Source: Fimbriosthenelais zetlandica (taxonomy: Eukaryota). From it: a DNA stretch of 64,000 bases. Under the pieces are notes generated by a model that saw nothing but the letters and a program-made list of their open reading frames with translations, did not search any database and had not been told where the DNA came from. The stretch is taken from assembly GCA_977030845.1 (NCBI GenBank), contig OZ365118.1, positions 18,476,001 to 18,540,000 of the forward strand, in the 5' to 3' direction. Of the stretch, positions 1 through 25,143 are shown piece by piece. The translations under genes and the position numbers were made by a program. The first letter of the stretch is position 1. Each line of letters begins with the position of its first letter.

Positions 1-106
1 GGAGAAAGGAGGTCTGAGATCCTGGGATAAACTGTTTAAAGTTTTAAGTGTTTGTCCCATGTCATATTTCTGTGTATTATATGAGAGTTTGTTTCCGTTT
101 TGACAG

Positions 107-579
107 TATCTGATGATAGGTGGTATGTGATAGGAGTTGATCATGAAGCTAAACATGGTGGAAACACGACCCACCTTACTTCCCCACTCACTCTCCTCAC
201 TCACCCACACTGTCTCCACTTTACCTACAAGATGGATGGTCTGAAACCAGACAAGTTCTCACTACATCTTAAACAGGCTGGCTACTACAGGTAGGTCTAA
301 TAAATACCCCAATTGCATAAACTTACCTACAACTATTACACAATCTAGTCTGTAATGCTATACCAGTAGTCAGTTTAATCTGTATTAAGTACCTCTATAT
401 TTGTAGACAGGTGTGGTGGGTGACGGGATACCAGGGTGAGACGTGGAGGGATGTAGAGCTGGACGTGGAGGGAGGAGAGTACCAGCTGGTGTTTGAATCT
501 ATCAGGGGGTATGAGGACACCAATAACCTACAGCTGGATGAAGTCTACCTCACCCCGGGCCCCTGTAATATCTCCACAT
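107..579 (+). CDS. MAM domain 1 (C-terminal part; exons 107-290 and 407-579)
   Basis: THLTSP....HCLHFTYKM...[12 protein letters not shown]...YQLVFE...[13 protein letters not shown], a typical MAM C-terminal pattern. Confidence 0.8.
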
Positions 580-3500
580 GTAAGATATCCTTGATTTTAA
601 TTAATTTCCTCAATTGCTGACATATTTTTCTCTGTATTAAGTTAATATAAGTTAATGCTGATATGAGCTGACATGTTATTTTGTGTTTCAGGTGACTCTA
701 ACACCAGTTTTAGCTGTAATAATGGGTTCTGTGTCGCTCTGTCGGTGGTCTGCGACGGCTGGGACGACTGTAGAGACATGAGTGATGAACTAATCTGCAG
801 TAAGCTTCAATCTCTTAATGCCTCAATAATTCTTAACGAGCTCTCATCAAAATATCCAACCTCTCTACTCAAGAGAATACCCAAGCTCTCTACTCACCTT
901 GACGCCAATTTCTCTTTGTTTAATGGTTCAATAACAATATATTCTTACAAGATTATATTAAATTTAAATTGGATTATATTAATTTTTCAGGTGATAGTTG
1001 TTTGACGGGTAGAGGGGAGTTCTACAATGGGAGAGTGAACGTGACCATTGATGGTCAGACGTGTCTGTTGTGGTCAGCTTTACCCGAGTCTCTACCGTTA
1101 CGTGTGTTTCCTGATAGAGATGAGAGAGGGAGGAGGAACTACTGTAGGAACCCTGGAGGGGGATTAGATGGTCCATGGTGCTACACCAGCCTGGCCGGAG
1201 ACTGGAGCTACTGCCCCGTCACTCGCTGCCGTTAGTACTTAATATTACTCCTAATCGTTTCTGTCTGAGATATCAAAGGCCAGCCATATTTCATTAATGA
1301 GAAGGTATACAAACATATATCATTAAAAGTCTGGTGAATGATATAAATGGTGACTATTGTACATTGTTTTAACACCTCAGCTTGCCGGGAGAACCAGATT
1401 GAGTGTCGTAACGGTCGCTGTGTGCCGCGCGCCGCTCAGTGTAACGGCGTCAACGACTGCGGCGACAACTCCGACGAACGCGACAACTGTAGCAAGTATA
1501 CCATGTCCTTAATATAATTTACTTTAGTGGAGTCAGTATGCTATAATGTTGCATTGCTAATTGGTGTACGAGGGAACAACCCATAGGGCAAAGTAAATGG
1601 TGTGGTCCAAGAACAATAAGTAGTGTTCAAGGGATGGACCGTATAGATATATCACTTTATTTACATTAATTCTAGTATTAATTGTAGTATTTTTGTCTGT
1701 GTGGTCAGCTGGCTCTATCAGTTGTGATTTTGATGAGCCGTACATGTGTGGGTATCAGATTGACCAGCAGAACTACCCCTACATCTGGCACCGTGATGCC
1801 TGGAACCTGGCCACAGGGGGTGAGTCCATCCTATAATATATAATACCTCTATAATGGTGGGTGCACGAGGTCCTGGGTTCAATCCCACAACCATTCTATG
1901 ACTTCCTCATTGTCCATATCCATCCAGTGCTCCTAACTGGAATATCAAAATCCAGCCATGTCTGTGGTAAGAAGCATGTAGGTCTACCACTGTCTGTGGT
2001 TAATATTTAACAGTTAATGCCGTATATTATACTCTCACTCTGTCTACAGATTACTACCTGTACGCCTATGGTTATAATGGTATCGCTAAGTCCGGTGTCA
2101 AGTGTCGCCTCATCTCCGTCCAGGTGAACATTTCGCGCCCTCACTGTCTGGGTCTGGAGTTTAAATACGGCTACGCTCTGTCTGAGAACTTCCGTATCTA
2201 CTTACGTTACGTGGATGGTATCTACAGACAGCTTGTTAACGTGCCCACGTTAATACGTTACAGCTACCAGGACCTTAACTACACGTTACAGCCGGGAGTC
2301 TTCCAGGTGGTGTTTGAGGCTGAGTCACATCAAGATTCTGTCTACATCTATAGTGTCCTCCTGTCACAGGGCTGGTGTGCGGGTATGTTACTGTTTCATA
2401 ACCATAGGCTAAAGCATTAATTGTTATGAAACAAGATATCAGTGCCCAGTTACCTGGTTACTGATTAGTAACCTGGTTACTGACTGGTTGCCTGGTTACT
2501 AACTAGTTACCTTGTTACTGATTACAGGTAGCTGTAACACCTGTAGTAATGGTGTATGTATAGATGAGTCGCTCTACTGTAACGGTGTCGATAATTGTGG
2601 GGATGGCTCAGACGAGACAGACAGAATGTGTGGTGAGTTTATATATATACAGCTTCATCAGTTAGACAATTTATACAGGTATAGATAGATGGTCTCTTAC
2701 AAACCCTGAATCATAGGTCTCTTTCTATACTACTACCCTACATATCCTGAGTCGTAGGTCTCTTTCTATACTACTACCATACATATCCTGGGTCAATGGT
2801 CCTTTTCTATACTACTACCCTACAAATCCTGGGTTATAGGTATCTTTCTATACTACTACCCTACAAATCCTGGGTTATAGGTATCTTTCTATACTACTAC
2901 CCTACAAATCCTGGGTTATAGGTCTCTTTCTATACTACTACCCTACATATCCTGGGTTATAGGTCTCTTTCTATACTACTACCCTACATATCCTGAGTAG
3001 TAGGTCCCTTTCTATACTACTACCATACAAATCCTGGGTTATAGGTCTCGTTCTATACTACTACCATACATATCCTGAGTCGTCAGTCTCTTTCTATACT
3101 ACTACCCTACAAATCCTGGGTACGACTCAGGATATGTATGGTAGTAGTATAGAAAGGGACCTATAACCCAGGATTTGTAGGGTAGTAATATAGAAAGGGA
3201 CCATTGACCCAGGATATGTAGGGTAGTAGTATAGAAAGAGACCAGTAACCCAGGATATGTAGGGTAGTAGTATAGAAAGAGACCAGTAACCCAGGATATG
3301 TAGGGTAGTAGTATAGAAAGAGACCTATGACTCAGGGTTTGTAAGAGACCAGTAACCAAGTATATGTCTTTTTTCAGATCAGTCCTGTTCTCGTTCTCTT
3401 AAGGGAGAATACTACATGGGTTTTATAAACCATACAGTGAGTGGCGCCGCCTGTGAACCGTGGAGTAACTACAGTAGTGGTCTACACATTACTAGCCTGC

Positions 3501-6500
3501 CTCACAGTACACTGGCTGACGCCGGGTAAGCCCAGTCTGTCTAACTAGTACTAGTATTAGTATGGTCATTATATCAAAATGTGTCTTAGTTTTATTGGTT
3601 GAATATTTCAGCAATTATTGCCGTAATCCTGATAATGCAGAGCGTGTTTGGTGTTTTGTGGATGGAGGGAAGCGTAAAGAGTTCTGTCATGTACCGCGCT
3701 GCCCTGGTGAGAACTTTACAATGTAACATTCTCTGAAAGTTATTCTCAACTTGATGTTTATATCATTAGGGATTGTTTGTGTGTAGGTTTTGCTGGGTGC
3801 AGCAGGCGGTCAGACTTTCAGTGTAATAATGGTAGCTGTATAGAGGCGGCCAGGATCTGTGATGGTACATCAGACTGTATGGACCCCGAGGATGAGATCT
3901 CACCCTGCTGTTAGTCACTATTAATAATCATCTTTAACATCATCTTAAATCTTCACTAATATGAACTTCTTACTCTCTGTTACCATTACAATCTAAAATA
4001 CATTTTCAGATTCAACTTTTGTATTATTTCAGACTTAACCAAAACAGAGAAACTCCAAAAAGGTACGTTATTACTGAACCTTATTTTATATGTTGTATAC
4101 CTCTGGTTTTCATGGCAGCCATGTTCTACCCTGACTTCATCTTTCAGAGTGTAGGATAACATTAGGCGGGGAGGAGTATAGAGGGGGTGTGAACATGACA
4201 CGGACTGGTCAGCCCTGTATATACTGGACAGATGACCACCGAGCTGACCTCACTCCTACTGACCATGGTCAGTCTGTGTTAGAGGAGAACTACTGTAGGA
4301 ATCCTGATCTGAATGATCGACCGTGGTGTTATACTGGACAAACAGGGGATGACTGGAACTACTGTAACGTGCCTAAATGTGGTCAGTCAAACTTTACTCA
4401 AATTTACACGGATCTTACTGAGCAATGATCTCTTTATTAAAAGTTCAATAACTCAAAAACTCCAATTTTAACCACATGATAAAATCTATCAAATGCATAT
4501 TTGGGGAAGATATCTTGAATTGTCTTAGATCGTTTGTCTGATATCTTGAGTGGCCACCAAACAAGCGTGATAAATATAGTTATAATATGTTTGTAGATTG
4601 CTGGATGGGGAACTTTGACTTGCCTTATATAGGATATAAGAACATTACTCCCAACGGTGTGGCCTGCCTCCCCTGGGCTTCCTTCGGTGCCAGGTAACTC
4701 AACCTATATACCTACATGACTTACCATAACTTTACGTGTGTCATATCTGATTATTTAACCTTTGTCTGCAGTGTGTAGGATGACTTTGCGAAGCTGTCTG
4801 ATTATTAAACCTTTGTCCGCAGTGTACGGGATGACTTTGAGCGTCTGTCGGACGAGGATGTAGAAGAAGCTGGGAATTATTGTCGGTTTTTAAACTGGCA
4901 CACACCGTTCTGCTACACGGCAACTAACAGGGTGTGGGAGGAGTGTGACGTGGACGTGTGTTGTGAGTTGGTGCTTCATACTACATACACTGACTTTAAA
5001 TCATATCATTTACTATTCATTCATTCATTCATTCATTCATTCATTCATTCATTCACTAATTCATTCATTTTTACAGCTGGGATAGCGGGAGAGACGCGTG
5101 GGATATCGTGTCAGTTTGAGTCTGGATACATGTGTGGATATACCACGTCTGGATCTGGTGAAGAGGAAGAGGAGGGGGAAGAGGGGAAGAGCGTCCGCTG
5201 GGTCAGGATGGGCTTCCCTCTCCCATTTAACTCTCCTCTCTTCCCACAACAACTAGGCACCAGTAAGATATTGTATTATTATTTAACTATATGTTTTAAT
5301 AGGCCTATTTTAATTGGTCATTAAACATAACTATGCCTATTGTAAGGCTTACTATACCAGACCTCTTATCATGTAATGAATGCCACTTATCCGTTATGTG
5401 TTGTTCATTCAGAGACGGATATCTGTACCCATAATGCAACACGAGGCGCAGACTACCAAGGTCAAACGTCGGTCACGTGGTCTGGTATCTCCTGCCAACG
5501 GTAGGTGGCTCTTAACTTCTGATAACCAATGTAATACTTTATATTCTATATTAATAATAACAACTAATGTTCTCGTACAGGTGGGATGCTAAGTTTCCAC
5601 ATACACAAAACAGTTATGATGATGAACATTTTCCGGGCGGTAACAAGACGTTAGCTCAGAACTACTGCCGTAACCCGAGCCTCCAGGAGACCCGGATGTG
5701 GTGCTACACCACGGACCGTGACGTCAGGTGGGAGTTCTGTGACGTCCTCCCCTGTCAAGGTCAGTCACGTGTCCCCTACTGCATTAAGTTATCATGAAAA
5801 ATATTAATAATTGGCTGGACAAGCAACCAAAGATTCTACTGAATCAACTGGGAATTGTAGGTCCTTTGGGTCCTTTGTGGGGGCAACGCCCTCCGTGTGA
5901 AATGTAGAACTACTGTGTGAAACTACGTCTAATTCATGTGGAGTTTAAATGATATTTCTGTGTGATTTCATGGTGATTTGTGTATTTCACAGAGTCTATG
6001 ATGCTGGCCATGCCTGGGAGCGGGCCTGGGGAGGCAGAATTCTTCTCTCCCTACAACCATTTCCCACCAGGACAGGTTTGGTGCTTGAGCTTCCGAATTC
6101 TGATGCCGGAAAGTACCCTACCCCAGCACCTCTCACTGCTAATACAGGGTATTGACGGGAGTATGAAGCAGGTATGGAGGGAGCAGGCGTCTCCTGGCTT
6201 TACCTGGGACCTCGTTCAGCTAGAGATAAAGCACCTCAACGGCCGACACAGACTTATCTTCAAAATCCAAGATGGCGGCGGTTATTTGGGCAGTGTGCTG
6301 GACAATGTGGACCTCAGTAAAGGAGCGTGTTCTAAGTTAACAGGTGTGTTATGTATATCTTTACTTTGATGCTCGAAGCTCCTGGTTAGAGGCCTGGTAT
6401 GAGTCATTCTCTCTCAAAACAACGGATTTCTGACAATAGGTTTTGAACTCTTTCAGGTTGCCTTTCTGGGGAGTTCCGGTGTGACAATGGTCGATGTTTA

Positions 6501-9500
6501 GATGAGTCTAAAGTTTGTGACGGTTTTGATGATTGCCTTGACAACAGTGATGAATCAGGCACTGGCTGTGGTAAGTCCCTATTTCACAAAAAAAAACATA
6601 TCTTATCTAAGGTTTATCCTTCTCTGTTTATCCCAGTGTTTACTATCTTTCTCATCTTCTTTCAGAATGTGAGCAGTTTCTATGTGACGATGGTCGGTGT
6701 ATATCAGGCTTCCTGGTGAATAACGGCGACCACGACTGTCTGAACGGCGAGGACGAGGGTGTGGGTGAGTACAGCGAGGTGTACAGTCTACCTCAGCCCT
6801 AATCCAACCCCCTACTTACCTGCGTAGCCCTATAAATGCTCTGTATTTATTTCAGTTAATCTAGGCAAAATGAAAACCCCAAACATGGTGGAAGATAAGA
6901 GAGAGACGATGAAGAAGACTAGATTAGAGAAAGATTACATCAACTATACCATACCAGACCTCAGTGGTGAGTGGTTTAGTTTGGCCGCCATCTTGATTCA
7001 GTGACATGTAGACTGTAAACAGTGACTAATGTCTTCCATGATTCCCCTTACAGGACCTCTCACCAAGCAGTTCCTGAGGGACGCTGCTCACAGAAAGGAC
7101 GACTTTATACATGAGTAAGATGGAACAACAGCACACTTTCTCATGATTTCACCATGATGATGCTCTGCCCCTGTATTTGTGGTATTTTGGGCTGTGATAT
7201 ATGCAGTATTTGAATGGTCATTTATGTTTTAGATGTCTGTGGGAGAACCAGCCGTGTGAGGAGGCAGCCATCAGTGAGACCTTTACTGACTATGGTCTCT
7301 GCTACAGCTTTAACAAAGGGAACAACTACAAAGCGAAAAATGCCGGTAAGTGATCCAGTAAATGTGAAACATTGACTATTGTAGCCCACCAGATGTAGAG
7401 TTCTCCATGTCTCTCTCCTGATTTCTATTATTTCCCCTTACAGGAGCACACTCAGGTCTGCGACTCATTCTTAATGTAGAAACTTATGAAGCCATGGAGA
7501 GAATAGAGGCCGTGTCAGGGGTGAAGGTGAGTTATATACTGCTAACAGATTATAGTTATCATTAGTACTTATTATGTTTATCATTATCTATGACTTAGTG
7601 GAAGTGTTAAAGCTTCAGGAGTTGATAAAGACGTTAAATCATAATGAGGAGAGTTTTGTTTTTGTTGAAGGCCCATGTCCATGACCCGGACACCCTACCT
7701 GCGCTAGGTGAGCAGGGGTTCTACCTGGCTACAGGTATGGACTACAGTCTAGAGGTGGATCTCATCAAGGTGAGTGAATTACACCTCCATACACCTGTAC
7801 AGGTGAATTATAGGTAAACCATTGTGTTTTTGCTTTCTTTGTCCAACGTTTCGGGAGACATCGGCCTTCTTCAGGGAATGGCCTATACTATTATTAATGT
7901 TTCTATATCTGATATAGGTGGAACATTTATACTATATTATTAATATATCTAAATCTGTTTGTTTTGTTTTATCAGACTCACAAGTTACACGAGCCCTGGG
8001 GAGACTGTGTAGATGAGCATCCTCTCAGGTTCTATACTCGTTATAACAGACCTAACTGTTTACTGGAATGTTCTACTAACTGGACGTTAGAGATGTGTAA
8101 CTGTACGGCCCCTCACATGCCCACCCCCCGCCACCAGCACGGGTCCTCACTCTGCTCCCTACGACAGTACATGGACTGCTACTTGTTCCTCCGATGTAAG
8201 TATACAGGTCAGCTCATTGCCTACAGTAGATTGAATGACTTGCAAATGCTTCCAGTTCCAATATCAAACCAGTTTTCATTATTGGAAGTGACGCCTTTCG
8301 ACCTTGCAAGAGTGGTAGAAGAAGCTCTTCTTGGTGACAGGTGGCAATAAATTTCGCAAGCAATATTGCAGAAGCCCTTACAATCATGTATATATATAGC
8401 TACTGATATGTAGATATATTATTTCCAGTTTATAACCAAGGCTCCTCCTGTGACTGCCCTGAGACCTGCCATGAGACATATTACGGTAGGAAACTCTCTC
8501 ATGGTAAGCTCGATCTCACGTTTATCAATGATTCTAAGCGACTCCAGAGGAAGGTGAAGCGAGCTGAGATCACAAACGACCTGCGGAACCCTCGACTATA
8601 CTACCATACCCTCAACTCACTCTACAATATCACACGACTACTGCACGGTGTCCTCCAACTCACAGACGGACTCTGGTTCACCCATACCCCGCCCAAATCA
8701 CACAACAGATGGATCTATAACATAGAACTAGGCCTGAAAAAACTCGTCAATATCTATGAAAGGTCTTATACACAAATATATGAGAAGGTGAAAGAACCTC
8801 TGTTATCTAAACTCCAGGATATAGTCATTGTTAAGAAGGACATACTTCTTTATCAGAAAGAACTGATATATTGGGAACATCGGATGCTTCTTTATAAAAG
8901 CCGTGACATTATTGACAAGTCTGTCAATGAGAGTATGAATGGAACAATGTGGAGCAAGGAAGGAACCACAATTATACTTATTGTAAAACAAATATCAGCT
9001 CAATTTGAAGGACTTAAAGATCTCTACCAGAGAAATGTATCTCAAAATGTAGACATCAGTAAGGCATTTGATGGAGTTAAACATGCCTGTGATGTTCTCT
9101 ATGACATTTCTACTCATTCAGAAGATCTAGATCCTTATCAAGTAGAACATCAACTCAAGTCGATCAATGTTGCTGTGAGGGGATTGTTGAGGGTACTCGG
9201 TACAGAGTGTAGTGAGGTGAAGTCTATAGTGAGGAGCCTGGACGACCTTCACCCTGACGTCACAGTCTGGACGTTATTCCGTCAGATGGAGAGACTGAGT
9301 GATGACCTCAGAGTCCGTGAGTTCAGGACCAGCCTGGTCCACCTCAATAAGATGCACCATGAGTTAGTACAGAGCTTCCAGGCCGAGTATGATAAGAAAT
9401 GTCTGGACACAGATCTAATAGACGGCCGGATGCTACCGTTAATGAGGGTGAACATTAAACAAGCCCTCTCACGTATCATCCACCAGTTCCTGGCGCCCTA

Positions 9501-10408
9501 TCAACTACAGCAGATCCACCTGGTGACAAACCTCACTACTAATTATGAAACGCTCATCAGAACGTTACGCAGGATGCGCGGGTTCCTCCCGCAGCGCCTG
9601 TTACACCAGACACTGGTGGGTCTGGAGGTGTGGAAGCGGACGCTGATAGATATCAGCCCTCGTGAGATAACGAGTATTAACCAACTCCAGCCGTACAGCC
9701 GTATAAAGGCGTACGTCATGAAGGATGAGCAGGAGTTAGCTGCGATTATTAATGAACATATGACAGTGTATACTGAACCCATAGTGAGAGCGTTTGAGAC
9801 GTACTGGAGGCAGGTGTACCAGTATGATCATGATCTACAGGTGGTGGATAAAGAGCTGTCGCACATTACCCGAGACTTTATACACAGAGTCACACTTCAC
9901 CAGCAATTCATCAGGTTAGTATAGGGTTACATAGTATCAGTTAGTATATTCTGCATCTTATCTACTTGTCTAAAGGAAGATGTGTTTTTAATGTATATAA
10001 AATGAAATGAATGAGTTGGAAATCATTCATACCTATTGATGAATTTCATGATAACTTTAGGTTTTTATGTTCTCCTTTTAACGTTACATGTTAGTGTTTG
10101 CTGTTATTTCAGTAAGAACTTCGTGAAGCTGGATGTGTATTTTGCATCTCTGAGTCGGTCAGATGTATCAGAAGCAGAAGGTCTCTCCAGGAGTGAACTT
10201 ATCAGTAAGTACCTTGAACATTCACTCATATTCACACCTCACGCCTGGAAACTTAAACCAGGAGTTATTAATGATTGACTGATGATTTATTACAGGCAGT
10301 ATCGGGGGTTTTATGGGACTTCTCATTGGTGGAAGCCTCATCTCAGCCTGTGAAATATTGGATCTCATAATTACTCTGATTATTGGAAAACACTGGGTTA
10401 AACCTTAA
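107..10408 (+). CDS. Chimeric DEG/ENaC (ASIC-like) channel with MAM, LDLa and kringle modules; 5' end outside the window; 30 exons
   Basis: Exons: 107-290, 407-579, 692-799, 991-1230, 1381-1491, 1709-1819, 2050-2382, 2528-2632, 3378-3525, 3612-3706, 3787-3909, 4033-4062, 4148-4381, 4597-4693, 4823-4962, 5077-5262, 5413-5500, 5581-5759, 5993-6343, 6457-6570, 6666-6764, 6856-6966, 7054-7114, 7233-7345, 7444-7526, 7671-7769, 7976-8195, 8429-9914, 10113-10204, 10296-10408. All junctions are GT-AG (one probable GC-AG) and phase-compatible. Total 5627 nt = 2 nt + 1875 codons ending in TAA. Contains kringle NYCRNP, LDLa DxSDE, MAM CxF..MCGY and DEG/ENaC motifs. Confidence 0.88.
692..1491 (+). CDS. 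LDLa-kringle-LDLa modules (exons 692-799, 991-1230, 1381-1491)
   Basis: [21 protein letters not shown]; kringle C..GRGEFYNG...[16 protein letters not shown]...YCPVTRC; [21 protein letters not shown]. Confidence 0.92.
1709..2632 (+). CDS. MAM domain 2 plus LDLa 3 (exons 1709-1819, 2050-2382, 2528-2632)
   Basis: [13 protein letters not shown]...W; HCLGLEF...FQVVFEA...LSQGWC; [25 protein letters not shown]. Confidence 0.85.
1857..2030 (+). mobile_element. tRNA-derived SINE-like fragment in an intron
   Basis: B-box-like GGGTTCAATCCC at 1875-1886 followed by a non-tRNA body; boundaries approximate. Confidence 0.4.
2691..3350. repeat. Fold-back element: 41-bp minisatellite array followed by its inverted copy
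   Basis: Unit ATAGGTCTCTTTCTATACTACTACCCTACATATCCTGGGTT, about 10 copies forward (to 3120) and 5-6 copies inverted (3121-3350). The outer ends GGTCTCTTACAAACCCTGA and TCAGGGTTTGTAAGAGACC are reverse complements. Confidence 0.9.
3378..4962 (+). CDS. Kringle 2, LDLa 4, micro-exon linker, kringle 3, kringle 4
   Basis: [15 protein letters not shown]; [20 protein letters not shown]; [15 protein letters not shown]; divergent [14 protein letters not shown]. Kringles 2 and 4 are each split by a phase-2 intron. Confidence 0.88.
5017..5069. repeat. (CATT)n microsatellite
   Basis: Run of TTCA units just upstream of the 5076 acceptor. Confidence 0.85.
5077..6764 (+). CDS. MAM domain 3 interrupted by kringle 5, then LDLa 5 and LDLa 6
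   Basis: [15 protein letters not shown] (5077-5262); kringle [16 protein letters not shown] (5413-5759); MAM C-part WCLSF...VW..W...[11 protein letters not shown] (5993-6343); two LDLa exons (6457-6570, 6666-6764). Confidence 0.85.
7054..10408 (+). CDS. DEG/ENaC channel core (finger end, palm, thumb, TM2) of the chimeric gene
   Basis: [47 protein letters not shown], ten thumb Cys including [19 protein letters not shown]2 [18 protein letters not shown] with a GxS filter; stop TAA at 10406-10408. Confidence 0.93.
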
Positions 10409-10984
10409 CATTAGCCGAGGCTACTCCATTCTTACCTCGTTATAACAGATAACACTGAAGACAGACATTAACAGACTTAGTATAGATTGTGGTATATATA
10501 TAGGGTATAATTTCCCATCATCCATTTTGTTCAAAGGAACAGAAATGGGTTGAGATGAATTAATAAGACACAAGACAGAAATATATAGGCCTACTTTTGA
10601 CGGCTTATTTCCCCCCTAATAATCTCTACATGAGAAATAAACATCTCCCTTCAAAAATAAAGTCCTTCCTGAACAAATACGACCGGGAGGTGTGTCGACA
10701 AAGAGATATTTCTACTGTTATACATGATTTATATTGTGTTTGCGGCTTTACGGGTTGCAAGTGTAGTTCACACTTTGCCCGCAGCTAGCCGCGGCGGCGC
10801 TAGCTGATGCTATCCCCGCCCAATGCTAAACCAGCTGCTTTGGCTTTAGGCTAGTTTATACCTATTATCAACACCAGACTATATATTGCATATACACATA
10901 CATGTTACCATTTCTCTTGATCTCTGAGGTTAATGTAACAATTCCAATATAATATATATTAGAATATTTCTTAGCCTATTTTGT

Positions 10985-10990: not shown

Positions 10991-11935
10991 CATTGAATGT
11001 AAAAGAAACTATATCTGCCCCTGTTAAAATATTAAAATAGAGTGGGCTGCTTCTGCCTCTACTACTCCCGACCTTGTTTATTTGTCGCTATGACGACCTA
11101 GTGTGAACTCCCCATACCTGGCTTTAGCACATGGTAGTAGAGCAAGTCTGACCCGGGATATAACGGCCTTCACATAGCGTTCACATGTTATATTCAGGTG
11201 TTATAATTACACTACCTGTATATAGCAGGATACCTATATATAGCTCCAAACATTGAATCATCTAAACATTGAATCACACCAGGCTTGGTTAACATTGTGA
11301 ATGAGGACGGTATATACACGGTTTATATGCAGCCATTCATGTGACAAACTGTTGTAGTAACCACCAGGATTCTACAACAGCTGCGAGGCTCGATTTATCT
11401 CTTAATGTGAGGAACGTTGGGATGAGGCAGACCAGGATAGGTTTATATAAACCCTGACGTTTTGCTGTAGTCTAAGGTAAGACTTCTATACATGTAAAGC
11501 CACAGTTTAGTTTTTATATGTAGTTATGTAAAGGATTAAGCCTGCTATGACATAACCCTCTTTATGCTGGGATTATCCTAATTTAACACACGTACAAATC
11601 CACATTATTTTTGTAATGCCCTATTTTTATTATGCCTTTTAATTCACTGTACACCAAATATACCACAAGACTCTGTTCCTCACACTATTTATTATTAATA
11701 GCTGTGTAGAAGATCTATAGAAGATGTGCAGGAGTATTGGATGATAAAGAATAGCTCAATATATGATCAGAGGTATATATAATATTCAAGTCAGGCTCAA
11801 TATTGGAGGTATATCTAATATTGCAGGTAAAGTCAGACTGAATGTTTGATTGAGTTATATATAATATTCAATATAAGGCAAAGGCAAAGTCAGGCTCAAT
11901 ATTTGATTCATTTATATCTAATATTTCAGGTGATA

Positions 11936-14900
11936 ATGGAGGGTAAAGGACTGAAGCTTAAGGACCCTCAGACGTTCCGTATCTTCATCTCCTCCCCGTT
12001 TAACGGGATGGAGAGGGAGCGTGACAGTCTGACCAAGCTGTACTGGCCGAGGTTAGAGTCACTACTGGCCACCAGGGGGCTGAGACTGCGGCTGGTAGAC
12101 ATGAGATGGGGAATCACCCACTCCTCATCTATAGACTCACAAACCATCAATATCTGTCTACGTGAGGTCGACCGCTCCGACTTCTTCATCGGTTTATACG
12201 GACAGAGATACGGCTGGCACGGCACCAACGATGTCAACCTACAGGAGAACTTTGAGAAGGCTAAAGATAAGTTCCCCTGGATACTGAATCACCGGGAGAA
12301 GAGTGTGACCGCTCTGGAGTACTACCATGGACATCTGAACGAGCCGGGTAGACTACCGGCTTGTTTTACATTCCGTCATAAATCATACGATGATCAGATG
12401 TTTATCAAAGCCAGACAAGATGGCGACGCCAAGCGGGAGAAGGCCTTCACTCCTGAGACACAAGAATCAAGTCACCTCCTGAACGACCTCAAACAGAAGG
12501 TCATTCAGACTGAAACTGAGACGTTAGGTTTACTCAATGATTACACTGAGCCAGAAAAGGCAGCTGAGTTCATCTTTGAATCAATCCTGACTTTTGTTAA
12601 AAAGGAAATCTTATCTGCTTCTGCCGAGCCTCCTTCCAAGAAGGAGAAATCGTTATTAGCTCACGAAGTGTACATGAAGAGTAGAGCTGGGAACTACGTT
12701 GGAGGTGAGAGATATATGGAGGAGCTAGACAAGTATGTTCTGGGTGATGATGGCACTAAACCCATTACAGTTATAGGAAAAACTGGCTGTGGTAAATCAG
12801 CTCTCATTGCTAACTGGATCAGTAATATGAGTGGAGACAAGTATAGCAATGTTCTGTGTGTGTATCATCTAGTAGGAGCTGAACCTGACAGCGCATCCAC
12901 TAATAATCTACTGATCAGACTGGTGGAGAACCTCCAACCACATATCCTGGCTGAGGATTTCGACCCTTCAAAAAACAAACTGGGCGATAAGGAACTCCTT
13001 GCTAAACTCCAGGAGTTGTTTAAGAAGTTGAATTCAGCAGAGACGAAGTTTGAGAAGAAGATAGTGATTATTGTAGATAAGGTGGACCATATGAGTGGTG
13101 ATAAGACCAGTAAACCCCTCTACTGGCTGCCACGCTCACTACCCGCACAGATACGGGTAGTTCTCACAGTCACCGCTGGTAATGAGGGCGCTGACGAAAT
13201 ACTAGAAATCCTCGATGAAAATTATCAAACTTTAAAACTAGAAGTGACTGCTATTAATGAACAGGATAAATGGACGCTCTGTCAGTCAATCATGGAGGAA
13301 CATTCTAAATCATTTGACGAGGAACAGCTACATCTGATCATATCCTCACCTAAAACCAACCAGCCCTTCTTCCTCATGGTGCTCATTCAGGAACTGTGTG
13401 TGTCAGGGAGGTTTAGAGAGCTGAGTCAGCAGATCAGAGCTCACCTCGAGGCTGAGGGAGTGACTGGCCTGCTCTGTAATGTGATTAAACGTCTGGAGAC
13501 AGACTATGAGAGTGATGAGATCGGCGGTAAGCTGGCTGAGGACATCCTCTGTGCCATCTGTCTGTGTAGGAAGGGTATCGCCGAGTCGGAACTCCCCATG
13601 CCTCAACACATCTGGGCTCCCTTCATTCACGCTATGGGAAAATATCTCATCAACAAAGGAGGCTTACTTACCTTCTCCTTCCCTGAAATGGCTGAGGCCG
13701 TGGAGAAATTATACATGAACACAGACGAGAAGAAGGGACAGGCAGCGGTCAAGGTGGCCGAGATATTCCTAGTACCTTACAGAAAGATGATCAGGGAAAA
13801 TGCAAAGACGGTTGATAAGAGATTGGTGATGGAACTACCGTACTTACTGAAGAAGAGCGGTAATAAGGCGGAGTTAATGAAGGTGATGAGTGACGTCAGG
13901 GTGTTTAACGTCATGTTCAGCTCAGCTCGCTATGAGCTCAATGACTACTGGCATTATCTAGGTGTCTCATCTGAAGTCATCGCTAGAAAATTACTGAAGA
14001 GTCTCGACTGTTACACGGCTGTGAGGTACTCACAGTTCCTGAGAGACTATAACCAGGATGGTATACAGAAATTAATGAGGTGGAAATCAGGCGTCATCGA
14101 TGACATCAGGATCTGGATGGATGTCATTAAACTGTACCATGGACTGTCACTGATCTATGACAGGGAGATCATGATAGACACCAGACGGTCTGACATCCAG
14201 GGTAGGAAGAAGGAGAATATACTGGTACAGGTGAAGTACTTCAAGGCGTGCTTCCTGTCTGATGTTGAGCAGTACAGAGAAGCTCTGGACCTACATATGG
14301 AGGTAATGAAGGGCAGGGAGAAGCTGATAAAAGAATCAATCATGGAGAAGGAGGACATTGGCATGTCATATCATGGTATAGGACTGTGTTACTATAATCT
14401 TAAAGATTACGACGAGGGTGAGAAATGGTTCCTCAAAGCTCTCGAGGCTCAGAGTGAAGATGACCCAAAAAATGCGTCATCAAATGGTAACACATACTGT
14501 AACCTGGGGTTGATAGAGAACTCACGGGGGAACCTTGATAAAGCCATAGAATACTTTAACAAGTCTAACGCCTTGTGGGAGGATGTCATGCCGGATAAGA
14601 TCTGCCTGGACATCGCCTATAACTACCACAATATGGCGCTGGTTCAGCGGAAGAAGAAGAACTACGATGAGGCAGAGAGGATGTACCTGAAGTCCATGAA
14701 GATGAAGGAGCGCTTGTTGGGGCGCGTATCGTATGATGTCGCCATCACCTTAATGAACCTGGGAACCGTGGAAACATACCGAAAAAATAACGAGAAAAGT
14801 CTAGATTATAATAAACAGTCGCTGGAGATATTTAAAAAGCTGGCGCCAGAGGGCTCTTACCGCACGATGATGGCGGAGGAGAACGTGGTGAACCAACTAA

Positions 14901-15613
14901 CGCTGTTAAAGCGATATGAGGAAGCTGAACCCATGTTCCAGAACGTTCTTAAACACCTGAAGAAAATGGAGGGAGGCTCAGCTAACGGCCTGGCTCCCCT
15001 CCACAGAAGGTTCAGAAACTGGTATGAAGACAACGGGTATAAAGAGAAGGCTCTAGATGTGTCTACAGGACTTGTGACTTGTTCTAAGTGTAAACCGGCT
15101 GACGTAGCTTACCATCTCATCCTGTATGACTCCTCATCCAAGACGACACGCGGACCCTGCCCACATGAAGGCACGTTTGAGTATGGGATGAAGAAATGGC
15201 CGTATAATAGAGACATCCTCATGGCTCATCTCTCTGTACTAGTGGAGGCGGATAAAACACAAGCCATGGACTTTATACAGAAGTATTGTGAGGATGGAGA
15301 GGGAGAGAAGCCCGGGGGAGGGCGCTACTGGCTCCTTGTGGACATCATTCATGAGGAACTCGAGGATTTAGAACTCGCTATTAAAGTCGCTACTCAGGCT
15401 CTCAACTATGATCCAGACAATGACAAACTTAAATGCAAAATGGAGAAGTTAAAAAAGCTCCAAGAGGAGAAGGCAGCTAAAGACAAAATCAAAAATGAGG
15501 AACAGACTAAACAGGAGAATGAAAAGGAAGGGACAAAGGATGAAGAGAAAGCTGGGGAAAACATAGAACAAGAGGAGACAAAGCAAAATGACTCAAAAGA
15601 CACTAACTCATAG
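11936..15613 (+). CDS. DUF4062-like N-terminus + NACHT/STAND NTPase + TPR repeats (nephrocystin-3-like architecture), 1225 aa, single coding exon
   Basis: FRIFISSPF.GMERER...VDMRWGI...ICLREVDRSDFFIGLYGQRYGW (DUF4062 type as in TEP1/NPHP3); Walker A GKTGCGKS; Walker B VIIVDKVD; TPR repeats (SYHGIGLCYY, TYCNLGLI, YHNMALV, TLMNLGTV). ATG at 11936 follows the acceptor TTTCAG at 11929. Confidence 0.9.
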   Translation: MEGKGLKLKDPQTFRIFISSPFNGMERERDSLTKLYWPRLESLLATRGLRLRLVDMRWGITHSSSIDSQTINICLREVDRSDFFIGLYGQRYGWHGTNDVNLQENFEKAKDKFPWILNHREKSVTALEYYHGHLNEPGRLPACFTFRHKSYDDQMFIKARQDGDAKREKAFTPETQESSHLLNDLKQKVIQTETETLGLLNDYTEPEKAAEFIFESILTFVKKEILSASAEPPSKKEKSLLAHEVYMKSRAGNYVGGERYMEELDKYVLGDDGTKPITVIGKTGCGKSALIANWISNMSGDKYSNVLCVYHLVGAEPDSASTNNLLIRLVENLQPHILAEDFDPSKNKLGDKELLAKLQELFKKLNSAETKFEKKIVIIVDKVDHMSGDKTSKPLYWLPRSLPAQIRVVLTVTAGNEGADEILEILDENYQTLKLEVTAINEQDKWTLCQSIMEEHSKSFDEEQLHLIISSPKTNQPFFLMVLIQELCVSGRFRELSQQIRAHLEAEGVTGLLCNVIKRLETDYESDEIGGKLAEDILCAICLCRKGIAESELPMPQHIWAPFIHAMGKYLINKGGLLTFSFPEMAEAVEKLYMNTDEKKGQAAVKVAEIFLVPYRKMIRENAKTVDKRLVMELPYLLKKSGNKAELMKVMSDVRVFNVMFSSARYELNDYWHYLGVSSEVIARKLLKSLDCYTAVRYSQFLRDYNQDGIQKLMRWKSGVIDDIRIWMDVIKLYHGLSLIYDREIMIDTRRSDIQGRKKENILVQVKYFKACFLSDVEQYREALDLHMEVMKGREKLIKESIMEKEDIGMSYHGIGLCYYNLKDYDEGEKWFLKALEAQSEDDPKNASSNGNTYCNLGLIENSRGNLDKAIEYFNKSNALWEDVMPDKICLDIAYNYHNMALVQRKKKNYDEAERMYLKSMKMKERLLGRVSYDVAITLMNLGTVETYRKNNEKSLDYNKQSLEIFKKLAPEGSYRTMMAEENVVNQLTLLKRYEEAEPMFQNVLKHLKKMEGGSANGLAPLHRRFRNWYEDNGYKEKALDVSTGLVTCSKCKPADVAYHLILYDSSSKTTRGPCPHEGTFEYGMKKWPYNRDILMAHLSVLVEADKTQAMDFIQKYCEDGEGEKPGGGRYWLLVDIIHEELEDLELAIKVATQALNYDPDNDKLKCKMEKLKKLQEEKAAKDKIKNEEQTKQENEKEGTKDEEKAGENIEQEETKQNDSKDTNS

Positions 15614-17546: not shown

Positions 17547-19119
17547 ATTATAATAGGTAGTGGAGGGAGATAGCCCCTAATCGACCAAGTGAGGAAATAG
17601 ATTACCACTATCTTAAATCAATAACTTATCGACCAAGTGAGGAAATAGATTACCACTATCTTAAATCAATAACTTATCGACCAAGTGAGGAAATAGATTA
17701 CCACTATCTTAAATCAATAACTTATCGACCAAGTGAGGAAATAGATTACCACTATCTTAAATCAATAACTTATCGACCAAGTGAGGAAATAGATTACCAC
17801 TATCTTAAATCAATAACTTATCGACCAAGTGAGGAAGTGCATGTATAATTTCCTTTATTTTCTTTGCTGTCCAATGTTTATCAGAATTATTCTCATGATT
17901 ATACCATTGATGATAGATCAATGAATAGTTAATCAAACAACCAAACATTTCACGGTTACTCGCAATGAATTTTGTCCGTAATATCACTATCCACTGCTTA
18001 TCCATGCATTCATTTCACGGTTATACTTCAGTTAAACTTTCTAGCTTAGATTATTTATACCCCTCCAGGTGTGCCATACCTAACACACTAGCTGACCATC
18101 ACACTAGTTCACCATCACACTAGCTCACCATCACACTAGCTCACCAATGATGACTTTATTACCACCACCAGTACTGATGGCTAGAAGGTACTGCCTCCAG
18201 AGGTGAAAACTGACCGCTACACTGACCGGCGCCCTCACCTGGCCTCCTTTATACTGGAGATGGTAGAGGAAGTGACCAGTAGATCTAAATACACTAATCC
18301 TATCATTACAATAGTCACTGACCAGTACTGTATCCGCCGGACCCTCACACACCCCCGCCGGGGCCAGTAACTGACCATTACCGGACCCACTGTTACCGAG
18401 TGGCCACGTCTCATCCTTCTCTACATCATGCATTATCAGATTATTGGAGTGGATCGGGTACGTGGTTGTACCCACCAGTACCCCTGACTCGGTCAGGGTA
18501 GTGTACCAGAGATGGGTGCTATCTGTGGTGAGGTGGATGAGAGATATAAAGGTGAGTTGATGGGTGTATATATAATATAGATGATGCTCGTTACAGCTGC
18601 CTATAATGAGGTGATTCATGTTGAAGGCTATAGTACATGGCTGTGACAGGTGTGTGAGCTTGATACGTGTCACATCCCCACTCCCCGTCAGTATGACAGT
18701 ACGTGTGTAGATCCGTACTCGGTTATTATCCGGCTCTGTGACGTATACGTCCCCGCTATACGTGCACGCCAGCCGTACGGCTCTGAACCCGTCCTCTATC
18801 ACCGCCACGCTGCACGCCCTGCTGTCGTTAACCAGTCTGATCTTAATGAGTCGTTTATCGTACGACTGGATGGCGACTAGCGTGTCAAAACTCACCCAGC
18901 ATAAGTCATCTACTGAGCTCTGGTCAGGGCTTGGCTGAGGCACTTCACATTCCATCAGTAGCTTAGCTGAAATCACAAAACGTCGCAACAATAACTACAA
19001 TCAAATCACTTGGTCGATTAGTGGCCATCTCCCGCCACTACCTATTATAATTCATCTAATTTGATGGATATTATCCGTTCTCACTTGGTCGATTAGTGGC
19101 TATCTCCCTCCACTACCTA
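17547..19119. repeat. Inverted repeats flanking the NHL exon
   Basis: 17547-17592 is the reverse complement of 19006-19051 (43/46). 17554-17593 is the reverse complement of 19080-19119 (39/40). Confidence 0.85.
17581..17836. repeat. Perfect 48-bp tandem repeat, 5 full copies plus a partial copy
   Basis: TCGACCAAGTGAGGAAATAGATTACCACTATCTTAAATCAATAACTTA at 17581, 17629, 17677, 17725, 17773; partial at 17821. Confidence 0.95.
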
Positions 19120-20027: not shown

Positions 20028-21458
20028 CTGAAAATACAAAGTTTCGTCACATTTCTTAATTTCACCATTGTTACGCACCCAGTGCTGCTAACTGGGATGG
20101 CAAAGACCAGCCATGCCTCCCACTATCTGGTGAAAGTCATGTCAGAGAAATCTGCCGAACATTTAAAATATATTTAATTTAACCATGCACCCCTTAAAAG
20201 TGGTGATATGAACTTCCCAGTTTTTTAAAAGATGTCTGAAGTGAATAGTATGAGGTGCTTACCTTGATACCTTATTACAATGTTTACCAGGTAACCACTA
20301 ATGTAATTGATCAGGCCATCCTCCTTTGTCTTGATTACCATGGTATTGTGTGTCCTCCATATACCTGGCTGCTAGCCGGCAGAACAGACTCTCCTATATC
20401 ACAAAAATTATATCGGCAATATATACAAAAACAGAGAAACAAAGTGAGATAAAAATTGTTGTATGTAATGAGGACAGTATGAGAAATGTCATGATATGTG
20501 TCCGCTCTCACACACCCCCTCCCCTCCCCCCTCGCCATCCACACCTGTCCCCATCCACCATCCCCTACCTCCTTCCTCATTCTCTATTCCCTTCCCCCAC
20601 CTTTTCACAGCAGGGGGATCCAGAGGTGGTTGGAAGTCAGGCCACTTTCTGTCGTTCAAATAATTTTTATTTTGCCCGGCCACCCCGACCCCTTCCCCAC
20701 CGCGGGTCAGTGATTCTGTCTGGGGAATTCCATCTGTCATGACCCCCCCCCCCCCCGCTCCCTTATTGTATAACTAATTTCAACCATAGGGCCTACACCT
20801 ACCCCCAGCACTTACCATCTATAGGCCACTCATCACGATCTTCTATTATCTAACATCAACTCAGGCACGACATCCTTTATAAAAGTATCTAGTCTCCTGT
20901 ATACACAACCTCCCAGGCATGTCTAGTCGGGAGTTAGCAAATAAAGTATTATTTTTGCCCCGTTGGGAATTTTTGATGATCCAACATAACTCAGTGTGTT
21001 TACTATGTATTACAGGACACGCCTGACTGGCCCCCACTATAGCTGGCTCTCATCAAATCTATCATCGATAGAGAAAATGTTCTCATGCATATTGAATGCT
21101 GTAAAATTAGGTATGAACCTTTATATTTTTAAATTCTTAATTGTCGATAATTATGTCGCCACCTAATATCTAGATGTGAGCTTCATAATGTAGCCTATTT
21201 GTAGGTCTAGGCACCGTAGCATTATGTGTAGTGTCATAGTTTTCCACGTGAGGGCGCCACTGTTCCCTTATCACTAATGGTGGATTCTAGGCCTATCTTT
21301 TAATCGCCGCGGTTACCTCTCATATAAAGCTTAGTAGGACTCTAGGAGCAAACCTAATTCTTTAAAACTGTCAAATATTTCACAGATCATAACTATTTAG
21401 GGCCTATTAGTATAGGTTATATTAGGTCTACGTGATAGACCACTGATCCCATCTAAAC

Positions 21459-22279: not shown

Positions 22280-24806
22280 CATTTATCTTTGTTTATTAGG
22301 GCGAGTTGGCTCTAATGGTGCTAGCAGTGCCAGCTTCCTATTAGCAGTAGCAGATCCTGTTATCAGTAATGACTTTATGAGGTTCTAACTCCTGTATTTG
22401 CAGCGTTCCCGGGTACAGTGGCGCCCTCTGTGAGGTGATGAGTAAACCAGGAAGATTACAGCGGCCTCCAGCCCGCACTCCGAGCGCAGTGAGAGGTGGA
22501 TGGTGGAAGAGTGAACTCCAAAACCACCCAAAATACCTACATACACCAAATATAGGCCTCAAAAACCAGAAAAAACAACAATAACTACCATCTATACCGC
22601 CTCCCAGGATACCGGCTGACACACGTCGTGTAGGTGCTATATTTTATTGAGGTTTTAATTATTTTAAGGTCAATTAAATTTGATTTTAACTGCACGGATG
22701 TGAGTGATACTGGAGGACAGGTGTTGGTTTGATTTCAGGAATTGGATTAATTGTGTGTGGAATGATGGCTGACTGGGCTGAGAGTGAGGGGAGGAGGAGG
22801 AGCGGGGATTAACATGCCTACACCTTGATATTACCCTCATGGTAAGATGCTGCACTTTATACTTAATACTTCATACTTTAATACATAAACGAATATATAG
22901 TCATTCTTCAACCTATCACTAATTTAATTGTTTTAAGAAGGTACAACTGTCAGATAATGATGCTGGTTTGTGTCTTTGTAAAAGAGTATTTAGTTATTTA
23001 TCCTGATTTATTAAAGCGAAAGAATTAGAGATATTAAACTTATGCGCAGCAGTTAAGGGAACCTTTTAGTAAATGATCATAAAATAGTCTTTGGTGCCTC
23101 CATCCGTCCTCTCTACCTCCCTCTCTTCCGCCTTCCTCCCTCTCTTCTGCCTTCTCTCTCTTCTGTCCCTCCTTTCCTCCTCACTCATTTTCTTTTCTCT
23201 TCTTTCTCACCCCCTCTCCCTAGCTATATCCCCACTCTCTCCCTCCTCTCTCCTCTATATCTCTTTGCTCTCTCTTCTAACCCACCTTGTTTTTTCTCTC
23301 CCTACCCCCACCACTCGAGCACGATTCATGATTCATATTTAGCCTGTATTCTCAGTAATGAGATATTTACAGATTCTAGTTTAAACTGAGCGATCTGTCA
23401 AGGCTCATTAGACATGGAGTAACAGGGAAGCTATATAAACAGGTCTAAAAGAACTGACAATTATAACACAACTGAGATGAGCTAGCAACGAGAATAACAC
23501 GTCATTAATGTAAACGATTCAGATCTACATCTGACTGATGTTGACGTTTTATGCTATTTAGATAAAATGAATTTATAGCCTCGACAGGGGGACGTTATGA
23601 AAAATCCCAATTCAATTTAGATTCTCATAAAATTCGTAATGAATGTAATTAATTTTCTCCGATGGTTTTAATGTGATTAATAGATTTTGTCTGATTTGAG
23701 AATTAGAAGCGTCAGGGATTATCTGTTAGAAGCGTCAGGGATTATCTGGGTTTATAAATAGATTTATGTTATCTCTGGGAGAAGTTGTGCTCTCTCTCAG
23801 GTCGAGTGTCGGCCTCTCTGATCGCCCAGTCTGATATTCTCAGATTTACTACCCCCAAGTCACTAACCCTCTCCCCTAAACGGCCAGTAAATGTCCTGAT
23901 TTAGGGGTGTCTGGGGTGGGGGCTCGTCCCCCCGTCACCCTACATCTCGTGTTTGACACCCTGGTCTCTGGGGTCTGTAGTTTAGCCTGACCACATGACA
24001 GCCAGCTCTGATGGCATGACTTTAATCTTAGGCCAAAAAACCAGTACGTTTATAGTAACTAGTCAGAAAACTTGACATTGACAGTAGCTACCTCCACAGT
24101 TTCATTTTTATTGCCTCAAAGAATGAGTTGTTGGGTTATGTAAGACCAGAGGTGGGTTAGCTGTGAGAAGGGTGAGGTAGGGTTAGCTCAGATTAGGGTG
24201 AGGTGGGGTTAGCTATAAGATTATCGGGGAGAGGGTGTTGGCTAGGATTATTTAGTATGGCATGGCGCCAGATTAGGGTTGTAAGACGCAGGGTTAGGGC
24301 TCATAACTAGATCTAGTGACGGTTTGGCCTGTCGTAGATAACATTAAATCTGTCTGTACTGGCGTATACCATTCCCCTTGTTGTATAAGTACAGTGGGCC
24401 CAGAAAGTGAGCCCACAGAGTGAGCCCACAACTCTCCTCCCATCCTCCCTCCCTCTGTTAATAACGTCAGATATAAATATTTGTTGATTCGTACCTCAGC
24501 CATCATTCGTCGTGGGTTTTGATGTGTTTTGTATTTTCCCTCCAGGTTCTCGATGTAAGCGTTCACATCACAGCGGCTCGGATTTTAATCAATGTGAAAA
24601 TGACAATAAGTTCTGAGGATATCAGCTACAGCCACAACCTGGATTTTGTTCAATGGGACTAAAAAGGTTCGTGAAAATGTTACATGAGAATTCTGATGCC
24701 ATTTCAATATCATAAGTCAGTCTGGATTTACTTTGCGGTCCTGTTTGAGACCTCAACTAGGCATTGATTCCAGTCAAGTGTATGTGAAAACGCCCGCTTA
24801 TCTTAA

Positions 24807-25033
24807 GCCACGCCCACTTATTCTAGGCCACGCCTATTTACTTAGCTCCGCCCCTGTAATGTGGGCACGCCCCCTAGCTTCACGACATGTTACCAGCCCC
24901 TCTCTGCTGCTACTTCTCATACTGGATTTATACTCGTCTTAATCTACAGGTGAATCCCGCTAATCTCGGGTCTATGATAAGCCACGCCCCCAGGTGATAA
25001 GCCACGCCCCTAGTTACATCGCCAGCCACGCCC
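24807..25033 (+). promoter_or_regulatory. Cluster of GCCACGCCC (SP/KLF-type GC-box) motifs before the start codon of channel gene 2
   Basis: Perfect copies at 24807, 24981, 25001 and 25025, plus near-matches. Confidence 0.4.
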
Positions 25034-25042
25034 ACCTGCACC

Positions 25043-25143
25043 ATGACCAAGGCACAGCGTCTGTTATGGACTACCTTCTTTGCGGAGACCACCCTACATG
25101 GAGTTAGCCACGCCTTCGATCCAAAGTCAGGCAAACGGCGAAG
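25043..25143 (+). CDS. Channel gene 2, exon 1 (HG motif)
   Basis: MTKAQRLLWTTFFAETTLHGVSHAFDPKSGKRR followed by donor GTATGT, phase 2; not present in the ORF track. Confidence 0.85.

Follow-up and report, generated by a model that had tools for sequence, protein, structure and literature searches.

A probable giant DEG/ENaC channel subunit gene in Fimbriosthenelais zetlandica, with a MAM/LDLa/kringle array in the finger and a helical insert at the knuckle

The window considered here was a stretch of 64,000 nucleotides from Fimbriosthenelais zetlandica (assembly GCA_977030845.1, contig OZ365118.1, positions 18,476,001-18,540,000, forward strand). Its segment 107-10408 was read, with a probability of about three in four, as the 3' three quarters of one gene for a very large DEG/ENaC channel subunit, which carries an array of extracellular modules in its finger domain and a second, helical insert at the knuckle. 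The 5' edge of the window cuts this gene within a MAM domain (MAM-A), and the full protein probably comprises 2,500-3,000 amino acids (aa). One gene is by far the simplest reading, because in each of two independent homologous loci the array has one half of the ENaC fold on either side, because the exons that connect array and channel are conserved and phase-compatible, and because the downstream half alone cannot place a disulfide-rich domain outside the cell.

A first-pass annotation, made from the letters of the window, had proposed 30 exons and an open frame of ~1874 aa; after curation of the splice sites by hand the chain consisted of 30 AG/GT exons on the + strand, all in phase, of 1,872 codons including the stop and with no internal stop. 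Most donors were close to GTRAGT. Intron phases were mainly 1, phase 2 being encountered within split kringles and around MAM-A. The modules followed each other as MAM-LDLa-kringle-LDLa-MAM-LDLa-kringle-LDLa-kringle-kringle-MAM (with a nested kringle)-LDLa-LDLa, followed by two short finger exons and the DEG/ENaC core. Stop-free + strand pieces of 1-10500 were scanned against Pfam, and these matches, together with the Cys patterns, agreed with the domain content and order annotated earlier. All five kringles and five of the six LDLa modules kept their six Cys. Ldl_recept_a was recognised on six pieces (E 1e-11 to 2e-6), and positions 151-194, 266-336, 354-429 and 432-454 of the ASC profile (PF00858) were matched between 7198 and 10405, the first two above the Pfam cutoff and the last two below it, on short pieces. 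The whole model displayed 92 Cys, 23 N-glycosylation sequons and, by hydropathy scan, a single transmembrane segment corresponding to the second one of the family (TM2); from these Cys and sequons, everything before TM2 looks extracellular. No trypsin-like domain was detected in any piece scanned against Pfam and no RxxR/furin-type site was found between modules, the sole RxKR/furin-like motif of the model being located inside kringle-1.

The part of the gene lying beyond the window edge was sought in two homologous loci. Both were composites, obtained from the contigs of two matches of the long knuckle exon by walking upstream in 10-kb steps and joining the overlapping pieces: ctgA (ERZ26222911 ctg1018519, bases 34697-80230) and ctgB (ERZ25767047 ctg39003, bases 345466-401306). 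In each of them 28 of the 30 window exons were matched colinearly at the protein level (tblastn, 17-68 % identity), the exceptions being a putative micro-exon (4033-4062) and the linker exon between array and core (6856-6966). Window, ctgA and ctgB also had several peculiarities in common, namely a kringle nested in a MAM domain, a last LDLa with four Cys, a finger exon of FLRDAAH type, a long knuckle exon and TM2. The array exons retain 26-68 % identity and complete Cys frameworks in all three loci, which indicates that they are translated and under selection.

Upstream of the part equivalent to the window, ctgA and ctgB displayed on the same strand further modules, identified as LDLa, MAM, LDLa, kringle and MAM, and a PAN exon (PF00024; E 8e-8 in ctgA, 3e-8 in ctgB). 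Upstream of the PAN exon came a short alpha1-like exon (ASVAIDHGLYDSL... in ctgA, QSVAVQAGLYDSL... in ctgB), which we take to resemble helix alpha1 of ASIC1 (RFSQVSKNDLYHAG). It was preceded in both loci by an exon encoding the first transmembrane segment (TM1) and FPAVTVCN (Pfam ASC 21/22-78/79, E 3e-12 and 2e-13). In ctgA the TM1 exon ended in phase 2 and the alpha1-like exon led from phase 2 to phase 1; the latter therefore feeds the phase-1 module array, and it would also splice in frame straight to the linker exon. For ctgA and ctgB a crude gene finder returned open chains that begin with the TM1 exon and end at the stop codon following TM2 (~3,190 and ~2,960 aa, respectively); these lengths are over-extended and serve just as a sign that an open chain exists.

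The flanks of the array could be mapped on known structures. On chicken ASIC1 (6ave) the TM1 exon of ctgA and ctgB corresponded to residues 43-100 and the first core exon of the window to residues 170-205; on human alpha-ENaC (6wth_A) the corresponding stretches were 86-137 and 276-314. The array, together with the alpha1-like, linker and alpha3-like exons, thus occupies the finger. The first-pass annotation had placed it there too, and this is supported by TM1 and FPAVTVCN upstream of the array in ctgA and ctgB and by flanks at ASIC1 residues 100 and 170. In the cryo-EM study of ENaC (PMC6197857) the GRIP domain is assigned to the outer edge of the ectodomain, "between alpha1 and alpha2", and sequence alignment supports the same site for the present array. 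Its size had been put at more than 1100 aa. A large finger insert of at least 1,100 aa is indeed present, with ~1,080 aa of array inside the window, but that figure was an understatement since upstream PAN, MAM, kringle and LDLa modules have to be added, and the complete insert probably reaches at least 1,700 aa. Module boundaries were mostly of phase 1 (the class 1-1 pattern), with few of phase 2, which suggests that the array may have entered a phase-1 intron of the finger by exon shuffling and then grown by duplication.

The modules of the array in the window, all on the + strand, were the following.

107-290, +: MAM-A, middle exon (Pfam MAM 43-96 on piece 85-291, E 4.5e-6; AG/GT; 43 % identity to ctgA and ctgB)
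407-579, +: MAM-A, last exon (Pfam MAM 102-158 on piece 321-617, E 2e-7; phase 2 to 1)
692-799, +: LDLa-1, six Cys, phase 1/1 (Pfam Ldl_recept_a, E 1e-9; Cys pattern)
991-1230, +: kringle-1 in one exon (Pfam Kringle 1-79 on piece 924-1232, E 2.5e-16; six Cys, NYCRNP)
1381-1495, +: LDLa-2 (Pfam, E 1e-11)
1722-2382, +: MAM-B, exons 1722-1819 and 2050-2382 (Pfam MAM 42-157 on piece 2004-2417, E 2e-3, below the Pfam cutoff; colinear matches in ctgA and ctgB)
2528-2632, +: LDLa-3 (Pfam, E 2e-6)
3378-3706, +: kringle-2, split into exons 3378-3525 and 3612-3706 (Pfam Kringle 5-33 and 48-79 on piece 3356-3723; phases 1/2 and 2/1)
3787-3909, +: LDLa-4 (Pfam, E 7e-9; donor leaves T)
4033-4062, +: putative micro-exon of 30 nucleotides (acceptor ttatttcag/A, donor AAAG/gtacgt, both strong)
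4148-4381, +: kringle-3 in one exon (Pfam Kringle on piece 4135-4425, E 5e-21)
4597-4962, +: kringle-4, divergent (NYCRFL), exons 4597-4693 and 4823-4962 (six Cys; colinear matches of 43-54 % identity; Pfam silent on the separate pieces)
5077-5262, +: MAM-C, N-terminal part (35-40 % identity to ctgA and ctgB; Pfam silent on piece 4809-5321)
5413-5759, +: kringle-5, nested in MAM-C and split into exons 5413-5500 and 5581-5759 (Pfam Kringle on piece 5561-5794, E 1e-14, and on piece 5346-5501); the best-conserved module, with 52-64 % identity to ctgA and ctgB
5993-6343, +: MAM-C, C-terminal part (Pfam MAM 59-158 on piece 5977-6366, E 4e-8)
6457-6570, +: LDLa-5 (Pfam, E 3e-9; splice sites curated)
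6666-6764, +: LDLa-6, a four-Cys variant lacking C4 and C6 (Pfam, E 6e-7; same four-Cys form in ctgA and ctgB)

Repeats were noted in and around these exons. The intron between LDLa-3 and kringle-2 carries a 41-bp satellite (10.3 copies at 2698-3121), directly followed by 5.3 copies of its apparent reverse complement (3128-3343), which would make a large inverted pair. In ctgA (22892-23222) one LDLa exon is followed by several tandem copies of its own 3' end and donor (…DCQDGSDEVRPCGMV*), and ctgB has a similar run. An intron of the giant channel gene in ctgB (L006 2108-4960) harbored a LINE-type (long interspersed nuclear) element with endonuclease and reverse-transcriptase open reading frames (ORFs) of 299 and 649 aa.

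From the array to the channel the exon path runs from 6666-6764 (phase 1) over 6856-6966 (phase 1/1) and 7054-7114 (phase 1 to 2) to 7233-7345. The linker and core exons were as follows.

6856-6966, +: linker exon of 111 nucleotides, phase 1/1, taken as an alpha2-like finger part (C-terminal DYxxYPxLDxxG common to ctgA and ctgB by eye)
7054-7114, +: alpha3-like finger exon of 61 nucleotides (conserved in ctgA, WLEAAHQKDNMIH, and in ctgB)
7233-7345, +: first core exon, CLWENQPC...GLCYSFN (Pfam ASC 151-194, E 1e-7)
7444-7769, +: two core exons, 7444-7526 and 7671-7769 (colinear matches of 39-58 % identity; splice sites; Pfam silent on the short pieces alone)
7976-8195, +: thumb exon, PWGDC...CNCTAPHMP (Pfam ASC 266-336, E 5e-13)
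8429-9914, +: palm strand CDCPETC...Y and helical insert in a single exon of 1,486 nucleotides (Pfam ASC 354-429, E 2e-3, below cutoff)
10113-10204, +: palm strand exon ahead of TM2, NFVKLDVYF (splice sites)
10296-10408, +: TM2, GGS filter, cytosolic tail of ~10 aa and stop (Pfam ASC 432-454, E 1e-3, below cutoff; 59 % identity to ctgA and ctgB)

The core displayed the conserved ectodomain Cys of DEG/ENaC proteins, in PWGDC...CLLEC...CNC (7976-8195) and in CDCPETC (8429-9914), and the G/S-x-S selectivity motif was present in TM2, which is the sole hydrophobic segment of the model. PDB matches of the core were ASIC5, ASIC1 and ENaC. The GGS filter matches that of beta-ENaC; the alpha3-like segment resembles FYDRAGHDIRDMLLSC, and the strand ahead of TM2 resembles by eye ILVLDIFFEAL of ASIC1.

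The long exon 8429-9914 encodes ~465 aa between the palm motif CDCPETC...Y and the strand NFVKLDVYF, i.e. at the knuckle. Its AlphaFold2 model, built on a seven-sequence alignment, was all-helical, with helices of up to 69 residues (pLDDT 77, pTM 0.70). When this model was compared to the PDB with Foldseek, no match with E < 0.02 was found and the TM-score was at most 0.29; as no convincing fold match emerged, the insert is, in its predicted form, a generic long helical bundle. The longest helix would give a spike of roughly 10 nm. Only one meaningful match was encountered in AFDB: K1PHY3, an 'Amiloride-sensitive cation channel 4-B', presumably from oyster to judge by its accession. It is likewise an ASC protein, and its residues 138-602 align structurally with the knuckle insert (probability 1.00, TM-score 0.42/0.34), although the identity is 10 % and the K1PHY3 model comprises just 678 aa. 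The ESM Atlas returned dynein-tail-like helices with scores up to 0.66, which were set aside as uninformative. An exhaustive HMMER search with the 494-aa knuckle exon against 1.84 billion cluster representatives yielded four ORF-type matches (21-26 % identity), two of them lying on long ENA contigs. P0001 (Logan) was considered as a transcript and rejected: its ORF ends where the window exon enters its intron, and it looks genomic.

Several observations weigh against a single intact giant gene. Direct splicing from LDLa-4 to kringle-3 (3909/4148) joins T to AG and creates a TAG stop. Inclusion of the micro-exon turns the junction into G+AG, that is GAG (Glu), and leaves the frame open, and ctgA likewise reads Glu directly ahead of the first Cys of the corresponding kringle; the frame of the window nevertheless needs an exon for which tblastn found no counterpart in ctgA or ctgB. 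Concerning the 5' part, the first-pass annotation had expected HG, TM1 and FPxxTIC upstream: TM1 and the FPxxTIC-like motif were seen upstream of the array in ctgA and ctgB, while in ctgA the 4.7 kb ahead of the TM1 exon yielded no HG-motif exon. For the gene of this genome TM1 would be supplied by homology to these loci, which may be paralogues and not orthologues, since the NACHT/TPR gene downstream of the giant channel in the window is not shared by them. No curated gene model stands behind the reading either; because the knuckle insert was not encountered in any annotated full-length protein among the 1.84 billion representatives searched by HMMER, current gene models probably miss or split such giant-channel genes.

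The TAG and the micro-exon without counterpart would both fit a copy that was recently disabled, a pseudogene of a real giant-channel family in which the micro-exon is coincidental. We consider this quite unlikely: TAG would be the sole lesion over 30 exons, with the 494-codon exon and all splice sites and Cys frameworks intact; the splice sites of the micro-exon come close to the consensus, and its inclusion gives GAG where ctgA has its Glu; and a polymorphism or a base-call error could equally have caused the TAG. The phases leave some room for another arrangement, in which the array of one gene is mostly an alternatively spliced cassette, a near-conventional channel being the main product and giant isoforms being minor or tissue-specific. 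Both the alpha1 donor and the linker acceptor are phase 1 and most module boundaries are 1/1, so that skipping stays in frame, and the number of modules differs between loci, ctgA having an extra kringle (20365-20583) between MAM-B and LDLa-3 that is absent at window positions 2382-2528. This arrangement is possible but unlikely, given array exons that, from their conservation in three loci, are translated and selected. A pair of genes lying head to tail, i.e. a membrane-anchored or secreted PAN/MAM/kringle/LDLa mosaic followed by a 5'-truncated ENaC fragment, appears very improbable. It could draw on the lack of HG, TM1 and FPxxTIC between array and core, reported in the first-pass annotation and confirmed by pattern and hydropathy searches (on the + strand of 1-10500 there is no FPxxTxC and no plausible HG-motif exon, the sole HG pattern match, at 8161, being in a non-coding frame), and on PMC3927609, according to which metazoan gene models often contain mispredicted fusions. 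However, in each of two independent loci TM1, beta1 and alpha1 precede the array and the C-terminal half follows it, and neither ENaC half would be viable alone. The exons at the junction are conserved and keep the phase. Lacking both a signal peptide and TM1, the downstream part would have no means of bringing its Cys-rich ectodomain to the cell exterior. We therefore retain the single giant channel gene.

Modules fused to DEG/ENaC channels have some precedent; the family as a whole is reviewed in PMC10148893. In the literature searched, no description of a kringle, MAM or LDLa in a DEG/ENaC was found, and the first-pass annotation likewise knew of none; no database-wide domain-architecture query stands behind this statement. 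Vertebrate ENaC (PMC6197857) shares the scaffold of the present gene, with an extra finger domain between alpha1 and alpha2 that lies at the trimer periphery and is able to control gating. GRIP, however, is a small beta-strand domain, a beta-sheet with an inhibitory tract released by proteases, whereas the insert in the giant channel is a far larger PAN/MAM/kringle/LDLa mosaic of another make. The EGAS channels of C. elegans, named as 'EGF plus ASC domain' channels (PMC10424705), show that extra modules on DEG/ENaCs have a precedent. Like the present gene they combine adhesion-type extracellular modules with an ASC core, but EGAS channels carry EGF modules only, are far smaller and gave no current in oocytes. 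The C. elegans touch channel MEC-4/MEC-10 works with the separate matrix partners MEC-1, MEC-5 and MEC-9; the idea of a DEG/ENaC pore coupled to matrix-binding modules is common to both, these modules being separate gene products there and part of the channel polypeptide here. The array itself recalls other proteins. MALRD1/Diet1 and MAMDC4/endotubin alternate MAM and LDLa as it does, in contrast to the interspersed kringles (one of them nested in a MAM) and the location inside an ASC protein observed here. Plasminogen and HGF combine PAN with kringles, which are found in ctgA and ctgB (PAN) and in the window (kringles); yet the window array has no protease domain, membrane anchor or signal peptide of its own and is embedded in a channel ectodomain.

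How such a subunit might work can be sketched. The domain content, the exon chain, the order common to three loci and the insertion site are shown by the data; a single mRNA, an upstream TM1 in this genome, trimer formation, conduction and the mode of gating are what we infer for the giant gene. The protein keeps a normal scaffold, with TM1 and FPxxTxC presumably upstream, a Cys-rich palm, beta-ball, thumb and TM2 with its GGS filter. To this are added the PAN/MAM/kringle/LDLa mosaic, in the finger between alpha1 and alpha2/alpha3, and a helical bundle of ~465 aa that takes the place of the knuckle at the apex of the ectodomain. The first-pass annotation had conjectured a receptor-channel gated by proteins or lipoproteins, or a channel equipped with a matrix tether. 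Most likely, three subunits would form a Na+-permeable pore, and their three long arms could hold on to matrix or to proteins outside the cell; when an arm is bound, pulled or trimmed by proteases, the finger may shift against the thumb and so gate the pore. The finger-thumb interface is also where ENaC GRIP peptides, as well as the ligands of ASIC and FaNaC, act on gating. The array modules (MAM, LDLa, kringle and PAN) are of kinds that bind proteins and matrix, and within the family the finger is the gating element that varies, which is why gating through binding, tension or trimming of the arm is favoured here. Tentatively, and with the odds still against it, the three loci would represent a self-tethered or macromolecule-gated DEG/ENaC family, in which a MALRD1/plasminogen-like arm of ~1,700-2,000 aa at the GRIP position, together with the knuckle spike, conveys to the gate the pull of the matrix, the binding of proteins or lipoproteins, or cleavage of the arm by proteases.

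In the remainder of the window two further genes were noted on the + strand. An intronless gene of DUF4062/NACHT/TPR type ('nephrocystin-3-like', gene 11936-15610 within 11846-15613, ~1,225 aa) lies 1.4 kb downstream of the giant channel; its best named matches were molluscan (Lottia, Liolophura, Gigantopelta and bivalves, 31-33 % identity), and ENA contigs reached 46-48 %. Judged by these matches, the genome would probably be lophotrochozoan, possibly molluscan, and have no close annotated relative, in keeping with the lack of annotated matches to the knuckle exon. Between the genes, at 17580-17836, a 48-bp unit recurs in tandem without mismatch (5.4 copies), with one frame open (PSEEIDYHYLKSITYR repeated). 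The second gene (25001-59617) is a conventional DEG/ENaC paralogue with a compact finger, which spans more than 34 kb and leaves the window. Its HG exon precedes the TM1 exon by 9.5 kb, and an assembly gap (N run, 46099-46283) falls in one of its introns. The exons found were the following.

25001-25156, +: HG exon
34419-35108, +: TM1, FPALTIC and finger (ASC 22-216, E 3e-18)
45079-45339, +: further exon
59255-59617, +: further exon

At least three assemblies contain a member of the giant channel family. Its architecture would indicate that inserts exceeding 1,000 aa are tolerated in the alpha1-alpha2 loop of the finger, and would offer a clear case of an ion-channel gene that acquired modules by class 1-1 exon shuffling. 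It has long been asked how force and large ligands are sensed by DEG/ENaC channels, and debate continues on the tether of the nematode touch channel. Equipped with a binding arm at a known gating hot-spot, the giant channel would be a natural construct for comparing tether and ligand models. If the tentative reading as a self-tethered or macromolecule-gated family is true, receptor and ion channel would be united in one polypeptide.

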